Assembly: GCA_051294905.1 (NCBI GenBank)
Contig: CM119374.1
Coordinates: forward strand, 17,360,001-17,424,000
DNA length: 64,000 nt
From: Botryllus schlosseri
Taxonomy: Eukaryota
Direction of reading: 5' to 3'
A program made the position numbers and the translations under genes. Under the pieces are notes generated by a model that was given only the letters and a program-made list of their open reading frames with translations, was not told the DNA's origin and ran no database searches. Below are positions 545 through 42,360 of the stretch, piece by piece (position 1 is the first letter of the stretch; the number at the start of each line of letters is the position of its first letter).

Positions 545-3500
545 ATGGGGAAAAAGCGTGGCAAGAGGTAAGATAATATGTGAATATGTATTAAGAATGA
601 TTTATACGTAAAATTTGTGAACGGATTTTGTGAATTTTATCTGAAATTTCATAATAACATTCTACATTTTAGACCTTCATCAGGAAAAAAAGAACCGGAA
701 GATCAAGACGTTGATGATGTTGACGTTGTATGTTACCCCTTGCTCACTTATATATATATATTGTTGTAGTGTTGAACTTGACCAATCTCTTTTCTAGAAT
801 GATGACAGCTATTTTGATGATGAAATCGACAAATTCCATGCGGAGAAAGAGAAAATATTGCTTGACGTCGACACTGATGATGAGGACAATTACGACAGTG
901 ATGAGGTAGGCAGAATCGTATTGAATTTGTTGGATCATATTGAACTGTCTTTCAAGCCATAGATCATAAAATGTTTTCATACTGGAATGTGGAACCATTG
1001 TCTTCAATGGCCTGAGCGATGTATCTTGTATTGACTGACACTGCCAATATATGTTTATTACAGTTAGCGCAACATCCTTGAAATCCCAGTTAGGGCTTCA
1101 TCTTCATGTAGACTAGATTTGATTTTATGTCATAAGACGTTGTTTTTCTGTCAAACTATATACTTGACTAACCTACGTACGTCGTACAGATATCAAACAA
1201 GTGACTGCAGTCACTGCACAACTGGCAACCATAGAGGGCTCGCAATTGCTTGTAGCTTCGTGAACAAATACCGTAATCTTACAGCCTTCACCGGAACGCT
1301 AAATTTATTGAAGCTGATCTTGAACGAAAGCTACTGTTGCAATACCTAAATTTTCCCCCAATTGTCGAAAATAGGGACTGTTCCGAACGATCCGTAAGAA
1401 TGTTCTATGACTGCGTTTCGAATGTTCGCAACAATGCTGACTTCTATCTTTATCTAAGCCTACCATATGTACTCTTTTAACGATTTCAGAATCTCGTTAT
1501 AATTGATCATTCCTTCCTGGCAAAAGTCGAGGGCGGAATCTATAAAATAGCTGGTTTTGTAGGCCTATCTGTTTTTGTAACTTTTGCCTGCAACTACTAA
1601 GGAAATGTAAAACATCATCAAACTCAAGCCTAACAATTAACTACCTTCGCTTTACTTGTCGGCAAAAAATGTCCTCTTTTCTGGTTTCTGAACATATGGT
1701 AGGCCTAGCTTTATCTGGGTGTCTTTGATTTGTACATGTCGCCAATGTCGCCAATGCCGACGTGTATCTATTTTGTCAATGTCGCCAATGTCGCCAATGT
1801 CACCAATGTCGCCCATGTCACCAATGTCACCAATGTCGACTATGTCACCAATGTCGCCAAAGTCACCAATGTCACCAAAGTCACCAATGTCACCAATGTC
1901 GGCTATGTCACCAATGTCGCCAATGCCGACATTGCCGACAATTCCGACATTGCCGACGATGCCGCTCGGGCGCCGAATCTAGGGTACTGTTTGCGTTTGT
2001 GGCCATGCAATCTTCAAGTCTTCCCGTCATTCGAGTACAGGTCAAGTCAATACCAAGATTGATTTAAGTCGAGTCACCAAAAATCCTGTCATTACAGTAG
2101 CCTACCCTACATTCGGCGCCCGAGCGGCATCGTCGGCAATGTCGGAATTGTCGGCAATGGCGGCATTGTCGGCAATGTCGGCATTGGCGACATTGGTGAC
2201 ATAGCCGACATTGGTGACATTGGTGACATTGGCGACATTGGTGACATAGTCGACATTGGTGACATTGGTGACATTGGCGACATTGGCGACATTGACAAAA
2301 TAGATACACGTCGACATTGGCGACATTGGTGACATTGGTGACATTGGCGACATTGGCGACATGTACAAATCAAAGACACCCGCTTTATCTGGTTCCCCAA
2401 CTGTGCAGTCACGAATTGCGCATCTATATGTAGGTTGGTTATCTGTAGTCCAACATCAGATGCCATTCCTATTTATTGTGTAACATACAGGAAGAAGTGT
2501 TGGCTGTAGCTAGCGACGATGAAGAGGACTCGGATCAATTTGAAAAAGGGGATAAAGAAGGTAAAATCAAATCACCAGATTCATTTATTCACAACTTGTT
2601 TATAATACAATAATATAAGCTTCATGTCAATAGTAGGCCTACACCTCTCATTCAATGTAGGTCTGATTGTTTTCCAGTCATTTATAAGATTTCCAACTTC
2701 AGACACAGAACTTAAACTTTTCCTTTCACAGTTTGTCATCAAGTTAACGGACCCTCACAGGATATTCACTAAAATACCAATATGTGGCGTATGTAATGAT
2801 TGAACTTGGCAATGTCAATGCCATTGTGTCATGGTTGTGATATTTGGTTGAATAAAAATATTGCCGTGCTTTTCAATATGGTCGCATAAATTTTATTGTA
2901 CAAATTGGTATTACTTATGATATCTAAAAATAAGAACGGCAATGCCATTATCTATGTGCTATATCGTGGCAGTGGTATCGAAGTAGCTTAAGTCCATTTT
3001 ACACATTTTGAGAGAATTACCTTTACGTGAAGTATTCATCTTCTTTCAGCCATACATTGGCCCTGATTAACCTAGACACACTGAGACAGACATAACCATA
3101 GCCAAGACAATAAGACCAAAAAAGTTGAAAACTTTTCGAAAAGTTGATTTTTTTCAAATTTTAAAAATGTACCTTCAAAATTTAAAAACTGGACATATGC
3201 TACTTTGATACCACTGCGACAATATGGTGAAAATGTACTTTGTCGGTAATGTGATATCTATCGGCAGCCCCTATTGCACCGTAATAAAAATTTTAAATGG
3301 GGAGTCAGTGTGCGCAGTTTCTGCAATGACACAAATCTGATAATGCTCAATCAAGCTAAGGGCTATTGTGTTAGTCATGCTTATTCCAGCTGACCATTCT
3401 CATACTTGTAAGTCGCAAACGCCATACCGTTACTCGCTCCACCGATCCTTCACAATTTCCATGTCACGCTTATGTATATTTTGTTCATTACAGAAGAGGT

Positions 3501-23857: not shown

Positions 23858-24072
23858 TGCTAGAAGGATGTGTTTTCATGCTGCGTTGCCGACGAGATGA
23901 TACTTTCAAGTCGCGAAATTAATTTACGTCGAGGTTGGTTTGAAGCAGGACTGTGGAGGAGGATGCTACTGACTCAAACTACTTCACTATGAATTCTATT
24001 GTTTTCAAATATTCACAGTGTAAAAATATCGCTTAGCTTAGTCGATTGACCTATTTCGTAAGCTAATTTGAT

Positions 24073-24108
24073 TATAGATCACTAACCTACGTAGGTTAGT
24101 TATCTATA
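24073..24108. mobile_element. 36-bp palindromic micro-element with 7-bp TSD
   Basis: TATAGATCACTAACCTACGTAGGTTAGTTATCTATA flanked by ATTTGAT at 24066-24072 and 24109-24115. Confidence 0.8.
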
Positions 24109-25142
24109 ATTTGATCTCCCTGCACTGCCCCTAGTGGTAGTGTTGAAAGTTTGTTCCGCCTGAACAGGACTCGTTTCTTGGTTGCGACGATCTGTAGACC
24201 CAGGTCGTAACGTGTAAAACTGCGTTATTAGTGCTAGACGGAGCTGGCATGGAGTGATTGTATAATGTATATTGATGGGTGATATCATAGAGGAGTTGGC
24301 CAATCCACCGCCATCATGTCTAATCCGCAATCGCGATTAGATTTTCGGCGGTACCGCGTTTCGAAGTGCTGGAGGCTGGAGGTTAATCTGAGCTCCCCTC
24401 CGTCGCAATTTTGAAATCCCTTAACAAAAAGACCAGACCGGGGAGTCTTGGTGAAATGCGAATACAAGCAAGCGAATGAAACGAGCGAAGAAAGCGTCAT
24501 CAAGAAATACTAATCAGCGCTTGACATGGCATCGACATGGCCTTCCGCCACATCATAGCAACGTAAATTGCTATGGTCACTGGTCACATGCAACATGCTA
24601 CCTCATTTTTGTCGCGTGTCATTTTATGTTATCATCTATTGTTTTCATTCAGTGCGCATGTTCTATGTACGATTGCGCATGCGCTTCTTCTTTACATCGC
24701 TATAGGCCTAGGTTGGTGTCTGATTTCAAAGTCTACTCCATGTTTGCACCCTTCCTATATCCTATCAGCCTTTTTTTCATCACCTTGGCCAGTCAGGTGT
24801 CTGATTTCGAAGACTACTCCAAGTCGTTTCGACTATCTTTCATTGTTCCGCAGTCTTGTGGTGTGGTGCATTGAAATGAAGAGCTTCTTGGAGGTACAGA
24901 ACTTCAATATAGAACTTCAATATATTGAAATGATGAAATATTTAGTATTGAACTGAAAGATCAAAATCGAACACTCTCTTACATCGGGCATTAGAGCAGT
25001 CTTTTCGACATTGACCCATCTGTTCATTGCATCGTATTTTCATATAAATGTCTACTATTATTTTGGTGTCTTGTTTATCGTATTGTACATCTTGAGCGTA
25101 TGAAACAATAAAAACCACTGACCACGATAACAGCAAAAGGGG

Positions 25143-25213
25143 TGCACTGCCCGGGAATCGAACCCGGGTCGCAAGAATGGGAATCTTGCATGATACCACT
25201 ACACCAGCAGTGC
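25143..25213 (-). tRNA. tRNA-Gly (anticodon CCC), 71 nt, intronless
   Basis: Reverse complement GCACTGCTGGTGTAGTGGTATCATGCAAGATTCCCATTCTTGCGACCCGGGTTCGATTCCCGGGCAGTGCA. The acceptor stem GCACTGC/GCAGTGC pairs, the anticodon arm is CAAGA-TTCCCAT-TCTTG, and the T loop is GTTCGAT. Confidence 0.95.
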
Positions 25214-25499
25214 TCGCGGCGTCTTCGGCATTTCTTTTGCAATATATTCTTACTACTTTCCGCGTTATGGTTGAACAACTTCTCTCTCGAGCAGATGACC
25301 AGCGTTACCATATCGAATATATTGTTCGATCCGTTCGCAGCTGTAACTGAAATAATGACCGTTGTACAGGCTGTGTGTGGAAATATAGGCGCGCTTCGAA
25401 CCAATACACATAATTCGTGTGAGGTTCATCAGTCAACTTGCCGTGCGAGCATCACCGCCACACCGAAAGCGTAGGCGATATGAACAGCGGAACGGCTGC

Positions 25500-25738
25500 T
25501 ACAGCGATATTTATAGCGCCCCTGGATATAGTATCGTAAGACCCGAAACGCCTCGCCCACTTTTTCAAGACGGGATAATAAAAGATACCAATAAATGTAA
25601 CGAGCGCCCGTAGCTATCGCTTCACTCCACAGAATCGCTTCCTCGTTTTCCTTTCTCTCTGTTTCTTGAAGATCGCTTTGCTACGCAGTTTTGGGCGTCT
25701 GACAGCTTCTTCCTTGTAATATCTTACGTTTCGAAGTG
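25500..25738 (+). promoter_or_regulatory. Possible CDC42 promoter and non-coding first exon
   Basis: CpG-richer, repeat-free segment ending in a donor-like GTG|GTATGT at 25739; candidate acceptors upstream of the ATG at 29937-29938 and 29948-29949. No transcript evidence. Confidence 0.3.
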
Positions 25739-27216
25739 GTATGTACGGTGATTCAACAGTGTGATAAATCTTGATGATTGGTCGCGTTGCTGCTTCTTGA
25801 AGTATGTTAAAATCGGGAAGGTGTGGGAAAGGGGTATATTTGAATAATGTTCTTGTGACATATTGATGAAATCACCTGGTATGGTAACTAGACTGTGACA
25901 GGGAGACTTGCTCAAACTTTTCATCGGTGGGTAGCTAGTTGAGTGGATTGGAACTATTGAAGTCACTTCAGAGTTGAGTTTTCGTTTTGAGCCAGGTTAC
26001 GTGCTAGTTAACATCGCTACCACTTTCTCTATTAAAATATTCAGAAATCAGTGAACTCATAGAAAAGTACGTGAGTTTTCCCGATTCCACAGTGTATGTG
26101 TTGGAATATATCTGAATCGTGACATTGTGGGAAGCTCCTGCATAGAGAGATCATGCTGACTCGATGGATTTATGGGATTATCCGTCTCATTGGTAATAAA
26201 GATACAGGTATCATATGTATCTACAGGATATCGAAGCCCCAAATATGTTCTCGATTGAAAGACGCACTTTGATGACCGTTTCTGCTTCATGTTTCCGTAA
26301 TTTAAGAAGGGAGTAGGTTGTGAATTAAGCTGTTGATACACCGCAATGCCCAACATATGTAGAGATACGGGAAGTGTCTGTGGCATGTGTTCATGATGTG
26401 TATATTTTTACAAGCAGTAACTAATAGAATGAAATAATGAAAAAATAAAGGAGTCGCAACGGGTCATTGTTATGGCCATTGTGTTGCGGTTATCCGATTG
26501 TTCTGAACAATGCCGATATTTCAGACTTTGAGGACAGATTCTAGGTGGATCAGTGCCTGATCAATATTTTAATTTATATTTTCGGAATCGGTGCAACAGT
26601 AGCTTTCGATCAATACCAGATTCAGTAATTTTTGCACTCGGGAAGATAGCTTTTGGATTGCCAGAAATCCTACAGTCGCTTACCCAAAACAATTCTCCAC
26701 TCCAGCCTCAGCGAAGCAGAATGAAGCTGCAAAATCGGTCGTTGCCGTTCCATGTTTAATTTCTATAATGCCACGCTTGCTTGCGTTGACTGTGGAGCGC
26801 AAGCGCCTTATTACTGTTCTGGACTCTGTTATCGCTTTGTGACGTTAGCATAATTCATTAATCGGCGTGATCAGATATAAATGCTCGCGTGCCGTTGCCA
26901 CCGATTCCACTCTGGGTTCAAACAAAGTGGCCTGGTAACCACTGCATGAGACTGCTAATGTTGGTGAACTATGACAGTAGCTGAATCTATTAGGCCTCTT
27001 CCATTTAGAAATTTCTAGTAATCCAGTAATTATAGTACGATCATTTTAATAGAGTGTGGTGTCACTGATCGTGACATATTTCAATTATATGCCGCAATTG
27101 TGTGAAGCATAAAAAGTTCAGATCATATATGGTTTATAGCTCAGAATATAATGTCGAGCTGTCATCCTGCTGGCAGGTTGCTTGCCTCCCTACCTAGTCA
27201 CTTGAATAGTGATAAG

Positions 27217-28084
27217 TAGGGCAATTATTTTTTTACCTAAAAAACGGAAGATTTTGACCTAAAAAATCTAAATTTTGACCTTTTTTGACCTAAAAAAACT
27301 GAAATTTGACCAAATTTTGACCTTACGTATGCAAATTAGGTGTTTTCGCATATAATGTTAAAATTGTACTACTTATCTTCATTTGTGGTTGGAACTGTCT
27401 GTCCTTACAAAGTAGATTGGCCTGAAAAAACGTTTTAGGCTCAAAAACTGACAGATTTTTACATGAAAAACTAGTATTTTAACGAAATCTGGCCCTATGA
27501 AGAATTCCAGTAGTTACATTACGTATTCTGGTGGAAATAATTAAAATTTGTTGTAGTACAACGAAAGATCCTTTCCTACATTCTCGGGTAGAAAGTGTCT
27601 GTCCTTACTACGTAGCTTGCCAAGAACGGTCAACAGCAGCATTTGTTGGCTGACAACACTCAAGTTGTGTGCACACTGCTGGTGACAAACCGTGTTGCTT
27701 CATTCTGACAATGTTGTCTACATCACAATTTTTCAGCTTGCGCTTCTTGATATAAGAACCATGCAATGTCCAAGCAGTCTTGCTTCAGCTAGGATATTGC
27801 GGTACGTTGACCATAAAACCATGTCACTATTTGTTTCATTTGACCATTTATGATTCACAATGAGCAGACGATGGTCCGTTTACAACGGTAGGCCTATAAA
27901 GTAGGCTACAAGCTGTAAAATATCAAATGATAAGTTCACCGACAGCGCAAAATCTACGATACAAACGAAATGCAGAGGTCAAAAAATGTTTGACTTTGTA
28001 AACAATTTTGTCAAATTTTGACCTAACGCTACTATTTTGACCTAATTTTGACTTTTTTTGACATGTCAAAAAAAAATTGCCCTA
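27217..28084 (-). mobile_element. hAT-like deletion derivative (uninterrupted copy of the 13606-15246 family)
   Basis: TIR TAGGGCAATT...AATTGCCCTA; reverse-complement similarity to 13606-13965 and 14881-15246. Confidence 0.75.
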
Positions 28085-28749
28085 GTGATTTGTTTCATAG
28101 CCTGACCATTGACCATCTATTCAAGATTCTCAAGGTTCATTAGGTGTTTGATTTTTCACGTATCGGTTGAAGTTTAATTATAATGTCTAGGTTGGTATAC
28201 ATGTAGGCTACTGCCACAAGTATTGAAACAAATCTACCGCACTGGAAAAATATCAATTCACAACCATGCTGTAGAAGAGAATGTCTCATGCTCACGAAAT
28301 GTCCTTTATACTGCTGAACAATCTTGATGATCAACTACAAATCATTGATTTTACTTTGATCCTGACTGATCAATTTCTTATTGATTTTAGCAATTCCGTG
28401 AGCAGTGATAGTTTTTTGCTTCAGTTTCTAGTAACGGTATATATTCTGACCACATTATTTGCCATACTAGGCTACAGTTCGAATGCATATCACCTGGCTG
28501 TACACGTGTCATGATAATTTATATATGTCATGACTTGACAGGCCACTGAATCTTATGATTAACTGCTTTGAAGAAAATTACTAGACCTGCGAGTATGTGG
28601 CAGGATGATGTAATCGTTCACCTGTCCTGCATCACATTTGTCTTCTTGATTGCGTTTTTAATGTAGTCAGTTATAAGTTCAAATTTTGTTATGGTTATGA
28701 AAGGATGTGCTAAATTGAAACACATGCGATTCGAATATGATGCTAATAT

Positions 28750-29880
28750 GCAAGCATGAATCAAAATTTCAACTTCACATATTTTGATAACTTGAATTAA
28801 AAATAGTAGTTTATGAATCTGAAAATAAAACTAATTGTGCAGTGAAAAGCATGCATCATAATTTATGTAAAGAAGACGTAAAATATACAGATGTGCCTTA
28901 TTGGCCCACCCGCAATTGCTCTTCAAAGTCGCACTAAAATAATGTTTAATATGGCCATCATTTACATTTTGGTCTACCATGTCACCTCCACTTAACCGCA
29001 GTACTTCTAGAAAATAGCAGGAGGGCTGAAATATTATGATATTCCTTTGCTGCAAGTTAGAATGTGTTATTATCAGTAATACAAAGTATCAGCAATCTGC
29101 AGTGTGAACATTCCTGTTTATTCGATTGTTATCGAATCACTTGATTCAATATTCGAAAGGCGTGGTCAAGTCAGAAATATTAATCGAAATAGAATGGAAT
29201 TAGCAATCACTTGACTTGATTTCAAATCAGTTTCGAAATTGTGTTCTGTTGAATTGTGGCTCTTCAACTTTGTGGACTTCTTCAACGTTTTCTTAAGCTT
29301 TGACTGTTTTTGGACCATATTAATTATACTATATCTTTACTGTAATTACTGCTGCTACTGTTGATGATATCAGTGTATTCTCTTGTTGTAAAGCTCTTAG
29401 GAATTAGAGGGGAAGTGCACGCTCTGTTACTGTGAAATACGATAGTGCTCCATGTTCTTGCTTGTCAATGCCTGAGGGTGGTCGTAATCTACTTCATTAA
29501 AAAAAACCATTGTAAATCACTCTCCACTACTGGGAGTGTTGGAGATAGGTCTTGAGTTACAGTTGATGAGGCTTTTCGTTTGAGTTGATTTGCCAGTAAC
29601 TATTAGATGGATATTTTAGTTGGTGTTGGGGTTCTAGCAATATTGTACAGACTATGTAACATTGATCTGTGTGGTAATACTCTAGATTTTACACTCTGAT
29701 TGATTTAATCCTTGTAATCTGCTTAGGGCTACATGAGCAGTGTGAGTCTGTGTCATCCTATTCAACATCAATACTCAGAACTTTTAGGTTATCATGTTCC
29801 TTTAGTATGGATAATCTGGTTTGTTGATGGATCACACCTTATCAGCGTCATTGTCTACACTTATGTTGTGCAGAGATCAG
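28750..29880 (-). mobile_element. Degenerate CR1/L2-like LINE ORF2 remnant
   Basis: Minus-strand remnants resembling AP-endonuclease-domain motifs (xYRPP-like near 29475-29495, TRITT-like near 29660-29690); many stops. Confidence 0.35.
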
Positions 29881-29991
29881 TTCATATTTTTGTATCTGAG
29901 GAAAAATGATCACTAAAAAACCTTTTACTTTTTCTCAGTGTCATTCTAGGGATACAGTACATATTTATATTGGTTGTGGTGTATTGTATAA

Positions 29992-34765
<4,774 letters not shown>

Positions 34766-37700
34766 ATTTGGAGCAATGCACTTAATCGACTTTGCGACTA
34801 CCCAATACACTCCCCTCCCTTTGTTAGTTCTAACGCTTGTCGGTGCGCATGAGCAGAATTCTTCTGTCGTCCACAGTTGACTTTGGTGCAGTGTCCTGTT
34901 TTCTTTGCGGGGGACCGTCTCCGCGTCCCACCCGGATGGGTCGTTTTTCATTTATTATATTCTATCGGCGTCTGTATCATCGACGGAAGACCGACGCTAT
35001 TTACACTGAGCCCCTGTTTCGACCTGGTTGTCCCAATAGCAGCCTTCATCATTTTCCCCGTATGTGATTGGCGTCGTCGAACATTTGCTGACTTTTTTTC
35101 GTTTGTAAAAATGGCGTGATACGATAATTTTTGCTTGTTCGCTTCTTTGAGGGCTGGCTGCTCTTGACGATGAATTTTCCGAAGAAAAAAACTGAAGACC
35201 AACTCAGATTCGTTGGTCAATCATTTTACTTTCTCTAATATGCATATATCTATTAGCCTGTTGAATGTCTTGAGCCGGTATCCCTAATTCTGCTTACGAT
35301 AGTGGCGTCCCATTTATGGGATCTCATTCATATTACTAATACAATACAATACAGGCGGAGCATTCACTACTACTTTTGTTTTGAATAAAAGCAGCTTTTA
35401 AATGACGCTATTTAAACAGATTAAAAAGAGCATTCCTGGTTTTGCCAAGAAATTATAGGTTCTCAGTTCTGTAGTTGGGGCTCATGCTGTCGTGCAGCGT
35501 CAGAGTAGATCGTTGATTCCGTTTTTCTATGGTCTTTCACTTGTAATACACGTACCCCACCGAAGTGATATGGGTCATCAAAGTTGTACAGAATCATGAC
35601 GAGATCTGCGAGTAACATGAAGTTATAGGCCACATCTAATTTAGCGGTGAAAACATTGATCTATGTTTTGATTCTGGATGGGTGTATCTGATACAGGGTA
35701 TAGGAGTACTGTTCGGTGCTTGAAATGACTTCGTCGAGGCTGTTGTCACGGGACGCAGTGTCTACAATGGCGAATATAAGTTGCTGGTTTGTGATGTACA
35801 AAAAGAAAACCTTTCGTACGTGGGGTTACCAATACGTCCTCTTTTTGATTGTAAGATTGTAAATGTCCTTCACTAATGAATGGGGTCAACCGGAAATCGA
35901 CATAACTGACACGAAATAGGTAATGCGTTCAAGCGGGCCATTCGGGAGCCGAATATGTATGTTTACTTGGGCAAGTTTTGTGGCAGTTAATCCGTGGAAA
36001 GTTGCATTTATTTTTGACAAAAGTTGCACTAAAATATAGTTTCAGTACTTCGTGTAAACAATTTCAAGAACTCGTTAAAATGATGATTCCTTATTGACAG
36101 GAAACCACAAAATATTCATGGGAATAATCAGAAAACTATGTTTGATTTGTTACTTTTGTCACTTCTATCTAACTATCCAAGGAAATGTAGAACAAGCTCA
36201 AACGCAACAAATAACGATTCGACTTTCCTTTCACTTGTCGGCAAAAATACTCTCTTTTTGGTGCTGAAAATATGGTAGGCCAAGTTAAAGAGCAATACAC
36301 ACTTGATGATAAATAGCCCATAGCTATGCCCACAATAGCCAAGCGAATTCATTAAAATATATACATCGGGATGGAAAATGACCCCCAAATCTTTAGCAGA
36401 TCTTTTGCTGGCTCAACACTTTGATACAAGCTCTGCCTATCGCAAATTATACATGAATATCCGCCTTCTCAAAAATATTTATGAACGTTCATAATCTGTT
36501 GCTCGAACGTATCAGCGGTCCCCACCAGGTGGGTATAGCTCAGTGGTTCAAAAGCACGCGACCCGTGGACCAATGAGACATACGCTAAAATATTCAAGTG
36601 TTCCGACTTTTCTTGCTGTGTAATATAATCTAATGAACGACAGCAAGCTAAATACAAATGTTTGGTCGTAACCGTCAAAATATAGGCTAGAATAAATATA
36701 TTAACTCAATGTTGCCCTAAATCAGTGGTTCTCAACCTTTTTTTGAACACGCCCCCCTTTTTCATAGTAAAAAATTTCGCGCCCCCCTTATCGTCATATC
36801 ACAAAATCCAAATGCTGGGATGCTAGCAACCCCAACAGATTCTTTGGTGGTATGGTCGGTTATGAATGTTGATGAGAGAATAAAAAAATAAGAAAATGGG
36901 TCTATATAGAGCAGGGGTTCTCAACCCGCGGGCCGCATGCGGCCCGCAGACGGTTACTTTGTGGCCCGCGACGTCTTTCATTATGAACGCAATTACTACT
37001 GGCACGGTATTGTTACATATAAATTGTCTTTGTAATTGTAATTGATTACTCATTGTTGTGTTCTAGTTTCTTGATATATGCTTGAGTTGATTGTTAGGCC
37101 TATTGTTTTGAATGGGTATGCGGCCGGACTCTTGTTCAAGAGAATCCCTCTGTGTAGTACACACTTTTAAAAAGTGTTTCCCTCGCCGTGAATGGTTTGA
37201 ACAGAAACAAGAACAAGGAACGGGAAATTAAACAGCGAAAATTGAATTTGTAACTCTGCGTGGAAAAATGAATGTGTTCTCTCAAATATTGATTGAAAAC
37301 CGATGTGTCATATGCAGGCCGTGTTATTTTTATCATATGCCAAAACTAACTTATTTTTGGCATTTTTCGATTTTTATTTTTGGCAGTTTTGGCATCGTCC
37401 TCTAAATAGATAGTTTCAGCCTCGAATTATTCACAAAAACGCTTTATTTGGGCTAGTTTGTCAAAAGACACCACAAAATGTGCAGCATCCACTTATAATC
37501 AGTGCCAACAAACAATAGGATGAAGAAAAAACCTAACGATTTCATAGGTTAATAATATCAAACGAAACCACAAAATGTGCAGTATTCATCGGAATCGGTG
37601 CCAATAAGCAAAAACAGAAAGAAAAGCCTAACAAACACGCTCAGCAGCTGATTGTTACAGCTGTTGAATAGACTTAAATCGTTTGCACTGTAACAGTGCT

Positions 37701-38131
37701 TCCAAACTCAGGTCAGCTAAGTTTCTCCTAAATTCATTTCTCGCCCAGATTCGGGAAATATCGGCTTCAACAGTAGCCGTTGAGGGAAAGAATGTTGCCA
37801 GTCATCCACAAAAGGTTTTCAGAGCTTCAAAATCTTTGGAGGGCCGAAACGGCTTCCATGCATCATGACAAGAGATCACTTCGCCAGTGCCATCGATCTC
37901 GTCGCGGAAAGAATTGTCTTCCCGATCCTTTTCCAGGAGTTTCCTGTGTTGTCTCTCAACACATTCTATTTAGCAGCCCGACTATCATTTCTCCTTCAGT
38001 TTACTGATATATTCACTTCAGGTGGCTTTAATATTACAAACTCGCATGGAAGAGTCCTGGGAAGGTTAGCTTGTTTAAGAACATTGACGCAACAAGACTG
38101 TCTGGCAAAACGAGACTATTCAGCTCAGAAA

Positions 38132-38394
38132 CAGAGATGGGCGTATTCCCAAATTTCGGGATCCGAATCCATCCGGATCCGGCTGGCAATGTGAGATTCG
38201 GAGTCCGGCTGTTGAAGGTCCAGCTTGGAATCCGAAAAAATCCTGCCATAACAATGCTAATTAATCATATTGCAGCAAAAAATCCGGCTAAAATTCGACC
38301 ATCACCGCAAATTCAAAATCCGGATCCAGTCCGGCCAGTTAAAAATTCAATGAAATCCTGCTCCGGCTCCTGAACCGGACTGTGGCCATCTCTG
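38132..38394. mobile_element. hAT MITE with CCGGAT subterminal repeats
   Basis: TIR CAGAGATGG...CCATCTCTG; perfect TSD CTCAGAAA. Confidence 0.85.
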
Positions 38395-38683
38395 CTCAGA
38401 AATAGCCAGACAGTTTGTTGCGTCACAATGTTCAACTCGATCGCAATGCAAAAATCGTGGTTGATTTTGGGGGTTCCAGTTCCATGAGCAGAATATAATT
38501 TATATTTTAATAATCAGTACTGCGGCAGCTTCTCATTGATACCCGTTTTACCAAATTTAGCGCTCGACAAGCCGGTCAAAAATGGTCGTAAAATTGCCTT
38601 TGGACAACTGGAAAGTATGACGTAACCCAAATGCAGTCAGCCGTTCAATCTCGCTGTGCCCACACCATTTATGACACCATTTA

Positions 38684-39650
38684 CTTCGTTTCCATGCTCG
38701 GCCGATGGGCCCATTTTCGAGAGACTCGGCCGACGAACGAGAGAATTTTGTTGCGCATTTACAGTGATGCACACCCACGTCGGCCGACTCGTCGGCCATC
38801 TAGTAAATCCTTCGGCTTAGCCCTTCGGCCATGCTTGCGCTGTGTCTTCGATTAGCTAATTGGTATTCGCTACTTACAATACACTTTTCGTATCAAATTA
38901 ACCATGGCTGCACTCCGGGCGGATCTTGGACGCCTTGAGAAACCAAGAATTATGATCGCAACGGAATTTAGTAGTACCGGTACTGCTACGAATTACTCGT
39001 AGGTTACCGAAATCTTCGCGATCTGATCACATACGCTGCTGCCACAATTCGAAGGTTTGCGTTCTATGGTGCATGGATACAATACAAACTATACCGCTTG
39101 ACCACAAACTAGGTGAACTTATTCACATTCCCCTGGTAAGCAAATCATCGACAGGACACTGGACGTTCATGTCTGAATCATGACGACGAAACAGTAGTAC
39201 CGGTAGACTACTGGAGAAGTTACTATTCTGTGCTCGAAATTATTGGACCACGATATCCCATATATCTATATCCCCCACATACTAAGATATGCCACCAATT
39301 TTCATCTTTTATCCATCTTATTTTATCTTCTGTTAGTTTTAAGCAATTGGTTCATCGTGACCATTTTACATGTTGGATGCATTTCGTGTTCAAGGTCAAA
39401 GCGTGTTATTTGATTGAATGACCGCTACAAGTCTTTTCGGCTCATTCCTACCGAGTCATTTATCGCAATCTTCTGATTATTATGAAATTGTTACTGAGTA
39501 AGTAAGCCAGAAACGTCATCGCGATCGCTTCGCCCACCTAGTTCGGCCAAGTCACGGTTGGGTTACGTCTGCTCATGGAAACACGGTCGACATGTACAAC
39601 GCATGCGTCATGGCCTTTCGGCCGACCGTCGGCCGAGCATGGAAACGAAG
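38684..39650. mobile_element. Non-autonomous element with 3-bp TTA TSD (PIF/Harbinger-like)
   Basis: TIR CTTCGTTTCCATGCTCGGCCGA; TTA on both sides. Confidence 0.6.
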
Positions 39651-41420
39651 TTATAGTGTCCTATTATTATGGTGACGACACAAGCAAATCGCACGGTTCA
39701 ATGAAATTGTATCACGTCACAGTTTCCATTTGGCTACAGGCAATTTGACGGTGATTTTTGACCGGCTTGCCGAGCATTAAATTTGATGAATCGGGTATCA
39801 ATCGAAAGCTGACGCTGTACTGCTTGCGAAAATATAAATTTTATTCCACTGATGGCCCTGGAACCCCCACAATCAGCCCCAAATTATTCATTGTCGAGTA
39901 GATTGGCAGTGTGACGCAACAATGCTGTCTGGCGAAACGAGAGACTAGCTCAAGAGCAAGGATGCGGCCGAGCCGCGAGAGTGGGATCAGCTGACGTCGC
40001 GGCAATAGCAATGTGCAACCGCGCCACAGAGAAACGCTGCGCTGTTGATACTTTTTCTATGCGCTTCGGTACAAGCAAGCACACACCAGCCTTTCCTTGC
40101 CTTGTAAGGGTAGAACTGGGTCCACAGAATGTATTAGGGCCCTGCCAATTTTCGCGCAATATCCTTCAGCTGATAGAGATATGTAGGCTACGTCTAAGTA
40201 GTCTACATTGGATATGTCAGATTATTATGATATCGATTGCCTTAGCCCGCTTGTTGCGTAGGGCTCCGAGATGCGTGGCGCTGTTGGTACTTTATATAGG
40301 CGCTTCGCTAAAAGCGAGCACACACCAGCCTTTCCTTGACTTGTAAGGGTAGAACTGGGTTCACAGAATGTATTTGGTCCCTACCAATTTTCGCGCAATA
40401 TCCTTCAGCTGATAGAGATATTTCTAGTAAGAAAAATATACTTTCAAGTAATAAGATTCACTAAAGACAGCTAATTTAGATAATGTAAATATATCATATT
40501 GTAGTAATACAACTACAGTGTTGAGTTTTCACTCTAGTCCCCATAAGCACCACGTCGGTGACCTTGACACCAAATTCCGAGAAGGCGAAAAAGTGCAAAC
40601 TCTGTTGGGCCGAATGGACAATGGACATTCAGTTACTCACAGATGCGAAAAAAATAATGCAAATCCGTTTTACGTAAGTTACATTAGGAATATAAATACA
40701 GGCTACAGAATGAATATAATTCAAATATCTGTGATACCACTGTATTACTTTTGACGCAAAAGGTCCCCGGCATTCAAAAAAACTGTTTGGTGATTGAAAA
40801 ATGCTAAACCAAATTCCAACGTCAACGTTTATAGTGATATCAGATATATTCCAGTGAAAAACAAAGGTATGAATTTGGTGGTAACATTTTGGAATCATTT
40901 GGCAGGTATGGCCCGCAAGCTTTCTAGTAACGGATTGAATCCGGACAGCGATACCAGTTTAATTCGACACTCCTGCTGTTAAACTTTATTCAACCATCAA
41001 CATTTTACCTGCTGCATTCGCGGACCAAGTCCTACCCATACGGATCAAATAAAAGCTTGTAATGAATGCTCATGCTCAATGCTCCTTGCTCACACTTAAC
41101 CATAAAAGCGACTATAGAAAGTATCGACACCCGCCATCAACAGTGCGACGTGTCTCTGGAGCCCTACGCAACAAGCGGGCTAAGGCAATCGATATCATAA
41201 TAATCTGACATATCCAATGTAGAGTTGTAGACTACTTAGACGTAGCCTACATATCTCTATCAGCTGAAGGATATTGCGCGAAAATTGGCAGGGTCCTAAT
41301 ACATTCTGTGGACCCAGTTCTACCCTTACAAGTCAAGGAAAGGCTGGTGTGTGCTTGCTTGTACCGAAGCGCATAGAAAAAGTATCAACAGCGCAGCGTT
41401 TCTCTGTGGCGCGGTTGCAC

Positions 41421-41466
41421 TATAGATAACTAACCTACGTAGGTTACCGTAGGTCAGTTATCTATA
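41421..41466. mobile_element. 46-bp micro-element with 7-bp TSD (relative of 24073-24108)
   Basis: TATAGATAACTAACCTACGTAGGTTACCGTAGGTCAGTTATCTATA flanked by GTTGCAC (41414-41420, 41467-41473). The mirror position in the host's other arm (about 40012-40020) has the 7-mer once and no insert. Confidence 0.85.
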
Positions 41467-42360
41467 GTTGCACATTGCTATTGCCGCGACGTCAGCTGAT
41501 CCCACTCTCGCCGCTCGGCCGCATCCTTGCTCTTGAGCTAGTCTCTCGTTTCGCCAGACAGCATTGTTGCGTCACACTGCCAATCTACTCGACAATGAAT
41601 AATTTGGGGCTGATTGTGGGGGTTCCAGGGCCATGAGTGGAATAAAATTTATATTTTCGCAAGCAGTACAGCGTCAGCTTTCGATTGATACCCAATTCAT
41701 CAAATTTAATGCTCGGCAAGCCGGTCAAAAATCACCGTCAAATTGCCTGTAGCCAAATGAAAACTGTGACGTGATACAATTTCATTGAACCGTGCGATTT
41801 GCTTGTGTCGACACCATATAGGACACTATGATGACACCATGCTTTCACCCCTATTGGGTGGGCTGGACCCAGATTAAGAAACCTGCCTTTCACAAACGCT
41901 CTTCTCGCTTGTAACGCGAACACAGCACCATGAACGAAATACACTATTTGGCAGGCCGTTTTATTTTTGGCATAAGCCAAAAATTGCTTAGTTTTGGCAT
42001 TTTCAAATTTTTATTTTTGGCAGTTTTGGCATCTGGCTCCTGAAATGCCAAAAATAACACGGCCTGGTCATATGTGTCGAAGAACAGTTGTCGTAACGAA
42101 GCGTAGAAGCTTAAAATGATGCCACGACAGTTTCTTCTGTATAGTTATACACATCGTCTGATCTCAGAAAACGTTACCAGCTAGGTGTCAAGCAGGAAAT
42201 CCATATTTAGAGGAGTTGTCATAATTGCCGACGATACGACGGTACAGAAGCATCCTCCAGAATTGCTTGGTATAACGCTAAACCCAAAAACATGCTAGAG
42301 AAGTTGTTATTTTAATAAAACCTCAATAAATCTTTAACATCATGTGCAATAATAGGCGCC

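Follow-up and report, generated by a model that had tools for sequence, protein, structure and literature searches.

The two short palindromic inserts found in the window (the whole analysed stretch of 64,000 nucleotides of Botryllus schlosseri DNA) are very probably excision footprints, that is, scars left at the donor sites of a Galileo-like cut-and-paste family of the P superfamily, full copies of which would once have occupied both sites. The formation of such footprints is an already known process, and the genome contains several hundred of these putative scars.

Two Short Inserts between 7-bp Duplications

As stated in a preliminary description of this DNA, each insert lies between perfect 7-bp direct repeats, ATTTGAT at site 1 and GTTGCAC at site 2 (Table 1). 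The site 1 insert is a near-perfect palindrome, in which only base 8 deviates (A>C). The site 2 insert (41421-41466) is a 46-bp relative of this 36-bp palindrome, and its right end (41447..41466) has the 20th end base, which is absent from the 36-bp form. Comparison with full-length ends bears out the proposal that each insert consists of a pair of element tips in head-to-head arrangement. At site 2, the insert is in the right arm of a host inverted repeat, whose left arm contains one GTTGCAC and no insert. Thus, 53 bp (46 + 7) were added in the right arm, and the second insert is a real addition, as first proposed. The other arm is empty at this position rather than occupied by a full element.

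Table 1. Features of the two inserts and their surroundings (positions in the window)
Feature	Position	Strand	Basis
Site 1, left 7-bp target duplication ATTTGAT	24066..24072	.	direct reading
Site 1, putative scar of 36 bp: junction of a pair of tips at a CG microhomology (17+CG+17), substitution at base 8	24073..24108	.	sequence and genome matches
Site 1, right copy of duplication ATTTGAT	24109..24115	.	direct reading
Site 2, left 7-bp target duplication GTTGCAC	41414..41420	.	comparison with empty arm
Site 2, putative scar: left element end, first 19 bases retained	41421..41439	+	comparison with full-length end in L011
Site 2, putative scar: 7-base filler TAGGTTA, templated insertion reproducing the complement of end bases 11-17	41440..41446	.	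direct reading
Site 2, putative scar: right element end, first 20 bases, one substitution	41447..41466	-	comparison with full-length end in L011
Site 2, right copy of duplication GTTGCAC	41467..41473	.	comparison with empty arm
Host inverted repeat of site 2, 2.15 kb, arms 99% alike	39668..41818	.	arm comparison
Empty site: single GTTGCAC in left arm of host inverted repeat	40013..40019	.	arm comparison
Full-size copy with ends of this family, old and diverged, 1.29 kb, duplication GTCAAAC/GTCCAAC	1157..2447	.	

The 19-base end occurs six times in the window, for 0.03 occurrences expected from shuffles, and has approximately 5,356 matches in the genome, against 19 for a reversed control. Further copies of the palindrome are present at 419 places in the genome when up to three mismatches are allowed (none for the reversed control), including 84 sites with an exact match. 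The view that chance or low sequence complexity explains the palindromes and the repeats beside them has nothing in its favour except the small size of the features. It is already refuted by the window shuffles and by the reversed-pattern controls (0 against 419-425 matches), and we consider its probability to be practically nil.

The Parent Family

The family ends begin TATAGATAACTAACCTACGG, and the ends of the short forms correspond to their first 19-20 bases. Full copies are 570-600-bp foldback MITEs, near-perfect palindromes with arms of approximately 270 nt, and a 6,693-bp copy (L047:1001-7693) carries the same ends, with a perfect duplication and inverted ends of 0.6-0.9 kb. The genome has roughly 2,000 full-copy sites, and the end matches counted above come from such MITEs together with 6.7-kb long-TIR elements. 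One of the MITEs, at L011:1501-2098, measures 598 bp. The 570-600-bp parents are typical MITEs, being non-coding, present in high copy number and having only the ends (terminal 35-99 bases) in common with the longer element. The 36-46-bp units, in contrast to MITEs, have no common internal sequence and retain nothing past approximately 20 bases of each tip.

Profile matches reveal decayed pieces of a P transposase in the 6.7-kb copy, all in broken frames. PF12017 (30.2 bits, cut-off 23) and PF21787 (21.4 bits) lie on one strand and in the right order; PF21787 and PF12596 (19.4 bits) are both below cut-off. Judging from these degraded profile matches, of which a single one exceeds its curated cut-off, the parent family most likely is a Galileo-like member of the P superfamily. 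Together with the 7-bp duplications and the GTnnnAC-like target, they agree with the affinity suggested in the preliminary description. Longer elements with these ends exist, namely the 570-600-bp and 6.7-kb copies, but no intact transposase gene bounded by the family ends was found. A search within these ends for a THAP domain and an intact ORF was likewise negative. The two loci with the best P-type ORFs of the weak-HTH class (L059 and L060; transposases with THAP, P-HTH and RNase-H) were considered as the autonomous partner and rejected, as these ends are absent within 10 kb of them and they show only remote likeness to the remnants in the 6.7-kb copy.

Like Galileo of Drosophila, the family has 7-bp duplications, a palindromic target of the GTAnTAC type, long inverted ends and many non-coding foldback derivatives. 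However, its ends have no sequence similarity to those of Galileo, and whereas Galileo has a P-type transposase (PMC4168063), the remnants found here are decayed and only distantly P-like.

Scars and full copies share their target preferences. The flanking 7-bp repeats matched at 6 or more of 7 bases in 18 of the 22 scars checked, and all 11 full copies (11/11) had 7-bp duplications. In both groups, the second base of the target is T and the sixth is A (approximately 90%), with a tendency toward GTnnnAC; the Galileo consensus is GTANTAC (PMC4168063). Two observations count against an origin of the short forms by excision: some complex junctions occur at two loci, and an extra TA adjoins the duplication in three of the 15 exact scars.

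Size Classes and Junctions of the Short Forms

Genome-wide, the short forms fall into a sharp size class, with 425 of 24-54 bp (no match for the reversed pattern), 14 of 55-85 bp and seven of 86-116 bp. Set against full-length ends, among them those in L011, they are made only of terminal bases of both element ends, with or without a short filler. Retention stops sharply at approximately 20 bases per end, with at most 20-21 bases kept in nearly all forms, and end sequence past base 21 is rare (approximately five in 100 forms). The centres vary widely. Besides the CG-microhomology palindrome, there are a form with the 20th base, one of 37 bp, blunt joins (20+20) and fillers copied from a template. 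Among the first 100 listed of the forms that keep 20 or more end bases on one side, the 36-bp form in which G, the true 20th base, is present accounts for 50 (at least 50 sites) and the 37-bp form for 21, the remainder including a blunt 20+20 join and templated fillers. Locus L026 has a 20+TAT+20 junction. Forms with fillers and other variants measure 26-51 bp. Such variation of the junctions between sites is what independent repair events would produce.

The preliminary description had proposed either that the inserts are the collapsed remnants of larger foldback copies, following hairpin-driven deletion, or that they are minimal elements that still transpose. The first proposal is supported as regards the derivation from larger foldback copies, but not as regards the hairpin. 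Under that hypothesis, replication slippage or a hairpin nuclease would have removed the MITE hairpin without any transposase. The structure of the full copies, with their long palindromic arms, is known to be unstable, and the products are symmetrical. However, collapse predicts a range of sizes or precise loss between the duplications, instead of the sharp 24-54-bp class observed, with no size continuum beyond it. In addition, the templated fillers and 1-2-nt microhomologies fit end joining of a double-strand break, and a sister family without short hairpins yields the same kind of product (see below). Collapse without transposase is therefore quite unlikely.

According to the second proposal, the 36-46-bp units are themselves mobile, as minimal substrates that are excised and reinserted with a fresh 7-bp duplication each time. 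The copies do number in the hundreds, are found at unrelated loci and show clean 7-bp duplications together with the target motif of the family, 84 copies are identical and a few complex variants are present at two loci. If units of 36-42 bp did move, they would be the smallest eukaryotic transposons known, and an end of approximately 18-20 bp would be sufficient for P-type transposition. However, no single master can account for the short forms, whose internal sequences differ. At least 137 of them keep 20 or more end bases on one side, including the 20th base that the 36-bp palindrome lacks, and many bear diverse fillers; full-length ends thus gave rise to short forms again and again. Regarding complex variants, the only duplicated form that could be checked, a 58-bp form identical at two loci, was copied together with its host repeat. 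Mechanistic considerations also speak against mobility: a stagger of approximately 20 bases would leave the strands of an excised 36-bp unit without common base pairs, and a unit without subterminal sequence, whose ends are 0 bp apart, could presumably hardly be synapsed. Moreover, the sister family independently yields the same kind of product. We thus regard mobility of the units as very unlikely, though a small part of the 84 identical copies may, with low probability, have originated by transposition of a two-tip unit.

This sister family (family B) has a different end, TATAGATAACTAAGGTAAACC, with 279 matches in the genome. Its short form is 42 bp long (21+21), which may represent a blunt join or a 22+22 join overlapping at CG. 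Among the first 100 matches listed, there are 17 exact 42-bp forms and approximately nine long pairs, and exact 42-bp forms number approximately 36 genome-wide, according to pattern counts from which the ends were also judged. The parent elements measure 3.3-7 kb and are not short hairpins, and one 7-kb copy has a PF12017 match. Each end keeps 20 (or 21) bases in the family of the window (family A) and 21 (or 22) in family B. Since retention differs between the two families, cut depth is not pinned to a single value.

A Proposed Model of Footprint Formation

The sharp limit at 20-21 bases suggests that the transposase may cut approximately 20 bases inside each element end. We infer the repair pathway and the former presence of a full copy at each site, and the sequence of events may have been as follows. 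A full-length copy, be it a foldback MITE of 570-600 bp or one of its longer relatives, would first insert, creating the 7-bp duplication. The transposase would then excise this copy by a long staggered cut, leaving approximately 20 bases of each end as 3' single-stranded tails on the flanks, and the gap would be sealed by end joining. At site 1, the identical tails may have paired via the palindromic CG located one base in from their tips, and trimming of the mismatched last base would give the 36-bp palindrome. At site 2, the partner tail may have served as template for a short stretch before final joining, producing 19 + 7 templated + 20 = 46 bp; the right arm of the host inverted repeat would thus have gained and then lost the element. 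A possible same-site case, in which a 5.8-kb insertion nested in a long copy (C12) was compared with a scar in another copy (C14), was rejected, as the two sites are 9 bp apart and their overlap suggests another transposon type.

Comparison with Known Footprints

The Drosophila P transposase makes a 17-nt staggered cut (PMC7776569). Its excision junctions contain both duplications and 14-17 bases of each end, and joins at a 2-nt palindromic microhomology are dominant, with templated insertions also observed (PMC2895639, Tables 1-3). The scars described here are similar in keeping both duplications, with approximately 14-20 bases per inverted end across both systems, and their commonest product is likewise a small palindrome, joined close to the tips of the tails through a palindromic microhomology of 2 nt, besides blunt joins and templated insertions. 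They differ in being natural, fixed and present by the hundreds in a non-insect genome, in retaining up to 20-21 instead of 17 bases, with a cut deduced from the scars, and in having a duplication of 7 bp instead of 8 bp.

BuT5, a P-type MITE of Drosophila mojavensis, provides a natural 27-bp footprint, with 12 + 15 end bases between duplications (PMC3355041). Here too, natural scars consist of the two ends of a P-type element between target duplications. However, the BuT5 footprint is a single case, located at an inversion breakpoint and with a 9-bp duplication, while the spectrum of junctions becomes readable here because there are hundreds of scars. In the literature examined, we found no report of abundant Galileo scars.

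Implications

If the short forms are excision footprints, a single P/Galileo-like family has left several hundred scars that became fixed naturally in this genome. They would provide indirect evidence for conservation of the long staggered cut, the hallmark of P-type enzymes, beyond the insects, at approximately 20 rather than 17 bases. They would also document, under natural conditions, the ways in which this animal rejoins germline double-strand breaks that have long non-complementary 3' tails: by 2-nt microhomology, by extension or trimming of mismatched tips, and by templated insertions of the polymerase-theta type. In repeat annotation, such palindromes should then count as traces of former excisions instead of being taken for a novel category of ultra-short mobile elements, and scar counts would allow the turnover of cut-and-paste elements to be estimated.

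The two inserts in the window

Both inserts lie where the preliminary description had placed them, each between perfect 7-bp direct repeats (ATTTGAT for site 1, GTTGCAC for site 2; see table). Site 1 is a 36-bp palindrome with a single substitution at its 8th base, and site 2 is a 46-bp relative located in the right arm of a 2.15-kb inverted repeat whose arms are 99% alike. As the left arm carries a single GTTGCAC and no insert, the right arm gained 46 + 7 bp; site 2 was thus rightly read as a true insertion facing an empty site. The insert consists of 19 left-end bases, a 7-base filler (TAGGTTA, complementary to end bases 11-17) and 20 right-end bases. The host repeat itself (arms of ~550 bp, spacer of ~1 kb) has the appearance of a foldback element, as yet unclassified, or of an inverted duplication that arose recently.

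Chance can be ruled out as the origin of the palindromes. Their shared 19-base end matches the window six times, where chance would give 0.03, and the 495-Mb genome ~5,356 times, where the reversed control gives 19. Also in the window is a 1.29-kb member of the family with this end (family A), old and diverged, with ends ~80% like the consensus, a GTCAAAC/GTCCAAC duplication and an extra TA at the start of its left end.

Location of the features discussed (window coordinates; L-numbers are fetched genome loci with their own coordinates; C-numbers are chromosomes of the genome, G000)
Feature	Location	Remark
Site 1 insert	24073-24108	36 bp
Site 1 target duplication, ATTTGAT	24066-24072 and 24109-24115	both copies flank the insert
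Site 2 insert	41421-41466	46 bp, GTTGCAC on each side
Site 2 host inverted repeat	39668-41818
Empty site in left arm, GTTGCAC	40013-40019	single copy
Diverged family A member	1157-2447	1.29 kb
Long family A copy	L047:1001-7693	6,693 bp
Complex 58-bp scar	L064:1701-1758, L065:1701-1758
Shortened relative of 58-bp scar	L066:1693-1740
Extra TA beside scar	L032, L040, L044 (1537-1538 in each)
56-bp scar in long family copy	L062:5258-5313
Scar with tandem half ends	C8:15393628-15393713
Strong P-transposase HTH matches, including	C6:29542296, C4:2654349, C8:17407244, C10:971474	stop-free frames
THAP + P-HTH + RNase-H-N open frame	L059:4250-6097	616 aa
THAP + P-HTH + RNase-H-N split frame	L060:3211-5761	194+382+271 aa

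The parent family

Paired ends in the genome are mostly spaced 570-600 bp apart. Such pairs delimit non-coding foldbacks, in which a small loop separates arms of ~270 nt; several subfamilies can be told apart (67-98% identity), and the ends read TATAGATAACTAACCTACGG followed by ATAGAT. These are also the ends of the inserts, which bears out the earlier suggestion that the latter derive from larger foldback copies. All 11 full copies inspected show 7-bp duplications.

One locus (L047) carries a 6,693-bp element with family A ends, a perfect ATGTAAC duplication and inverted ends of 0.6-0.9 kb; relatives occur on at least four other chromosomes. It contains, in broken pieces on the same strand and in the correct order, matches to the P-transposase HTH domain PF12017 (30.2 bits, cut-off 23) and to the RNase-H N domain PF21787 (21.4 bits, below cut-off). 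The 570-600-bp MITEs have only their terminal 35-99 bases in common with this element, as is typical of a MITE and its partner element. Target sites have T at position 2 and A at position 6 in ~90% of cases and tend towards GTnnnAC, resembling, together with the 7-bp duplication, those of Galileo (GTANTAC, 7 bp; PMC4168063). PF12017 is matched at least 120 times in the genome, and Ciona is known to have P transposons (Kimbacher et al. 2009, as cited in PMC7776569). On these grounds we place family A, in keeping with the preliminary description, in the P superfamily as a Galileo-like group, with the reservation that its transposase is represented by weak, broken domain matches, no intact gene having been found between family A ends.

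Elsewhere, many strong matches to the P-transposase HTH domain fall in stop-free frames 792-813 aa long and may mark intact P-type transposons of other families. Two further loci (L059 and L060) have none of the studied ends within 10 kb of their open frames, which may represent another P family or a domesticated THAP9-like gene.

Short forms across the genome

Allowing up to three mismatches, 419 places hold the 36-bp palindrome, and 84 hold it exactly; the 15 exact copies fetched are all at separate loci, each with its own 7-bp duplication. Counting any sequence between exact 12-base ends genome-wide, we found 425 short forms of 24-54 bp, 14 of 55-85 bp and 7, mostly composites, of 86-116 bp. 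Short forms are thus a sharp size class rather than a continuum. Within the 24-54-bp class outer parts are constant and centres vary; total lengths in a sample of 50 are 26, 27, 33, 34, 36-43, 45, 46, 49 and 51 bp.

Setting these centres against the full-length end, the exact palindrome corresponds to 19 + 19 end bases with a palindromic CG overlap, while in 137 further forms one side retains 20 or more end bases. Of the first 100 such forms, 50 are 36 bp long and match the palindrome except that their centre holds the true 20th base (G), 21 are 37 bp long (20 + 17, or 19 + 18 with a 1-nt overlap), a single form joins 20 + 20 bluntly, and the remainder have fillers copying nearby end sequence; genuine end sequence past base 21 is found in only ~5 of 100. 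One fetched locus (L026) reads 20 + TAT + 20. As the site 2 insert and many others hold an end base absent from the palindrome, they cannot descend from it; each would have been newly made from a full-length end.

A sister family (family B, 279 matches) shares the first 13 end bases and then diverges (…CTAAGGTAAACC). Its full-size members are 3.3-kb and 7-kb elements, one 7-kb copy containing a PF12017 match, and its dominant short form is 42 bp long (21 + 21, ~36 exact copies). Because long members lack a GG continuation after base 21, the join is at or just after that base. That two families with different ends give the same kind of product points to a process that affects element ends in general rather than to the chance success of a single small element.

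It had been suggested that the inserts might be minimal elements that still transpose. Clean duplications and 84 identical copies are compatible with such mobility, but the diverse junctions, the 20th base kept in many forms and the family B product make it most improbable. The one multi-locus complex form that was checked, a 58-bp scar composed of a half end, a copied flank/end junction and a scar, and present on C1 and C2 at 99% and on C4 at 90% with a further 10-bp deletion, argues against it as well: it lies beside a (CT)n tract in a multi-copy repeat, most other copies of which are empty at that point, and was thus duplicated along with its host.

Some scars show additional features. An extra TA separates one element end from the 7-bp duplication in 3 of 15 exact 36-bp scars, against none of 11 full copies. 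A 56-bp scar inside a long family copy has a right flank that departs from the host sequence, with no matching duplication, as if excision had deleted or rearranged the flank on one side. On C8, a small tandem array has been built from a half-scar: the scar is followed by two units in tandem, each made of a 7-base spacer and an 18-base half end.

Short forms as probable excision footprints

The hallmark of P transposase is a 17-nt staggered cut at each end (PMC7776569), which gives the flanking DNA non-complementary 3' tails, each consisting of 17 nt of element sequence (PMC2895639). Sequenced repair junctions keep both 8-bp duplications and 14-17 bases per end, mostly through 2-nt palindromic microhomology joins near the tips (14 + AT + 14 was recovered 14 times), with blunt joins and templated insertions also present (PMC2895639). 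Family A scars show the same pattern, with 20 replacing 17, and both window inserts are very probably excision footprints. We infer a cut depth of 20 or 21 bases for family A and of 21 or 22 for family B.

Two identical 20-base tails could pair via the CG that precedes their last base. If the mismatched terminal G were then trimmed, the exact palindrome (84 sites) would result, and if it were extended, the G form (at least 50 sites). The 37-bp form would arise where the terminal G paired with the partner's C, and the fillers from synthesis, dissociation and re-annealing. After such a stagger an excised 36-bp unit would presumably hold no paired bases, a further difficulty for mobile mini-elements. 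Hairpin-driven collapse of foldback copies, the other origin first put forward, would involve no transposase. The parents are truly long palindromes, as it supposes, but it does not account for the sharp cut-off at 20-21 bases, for parents of 3-7 kb giving the same product or for the templated fillers, and is very unlikely.

Natural excision footprints have a single precedent, a 27-bp scar left by the P-type MITE BuT5 (PMC3355041), whereas the natural scars of family A number in the hundreds. Their value lies in this scale and in their legibility; the present analysis contributes the family A ends and parents, the counts, the 20-base limit, family B, the templated 46-bp insert and a scar copied with its host.
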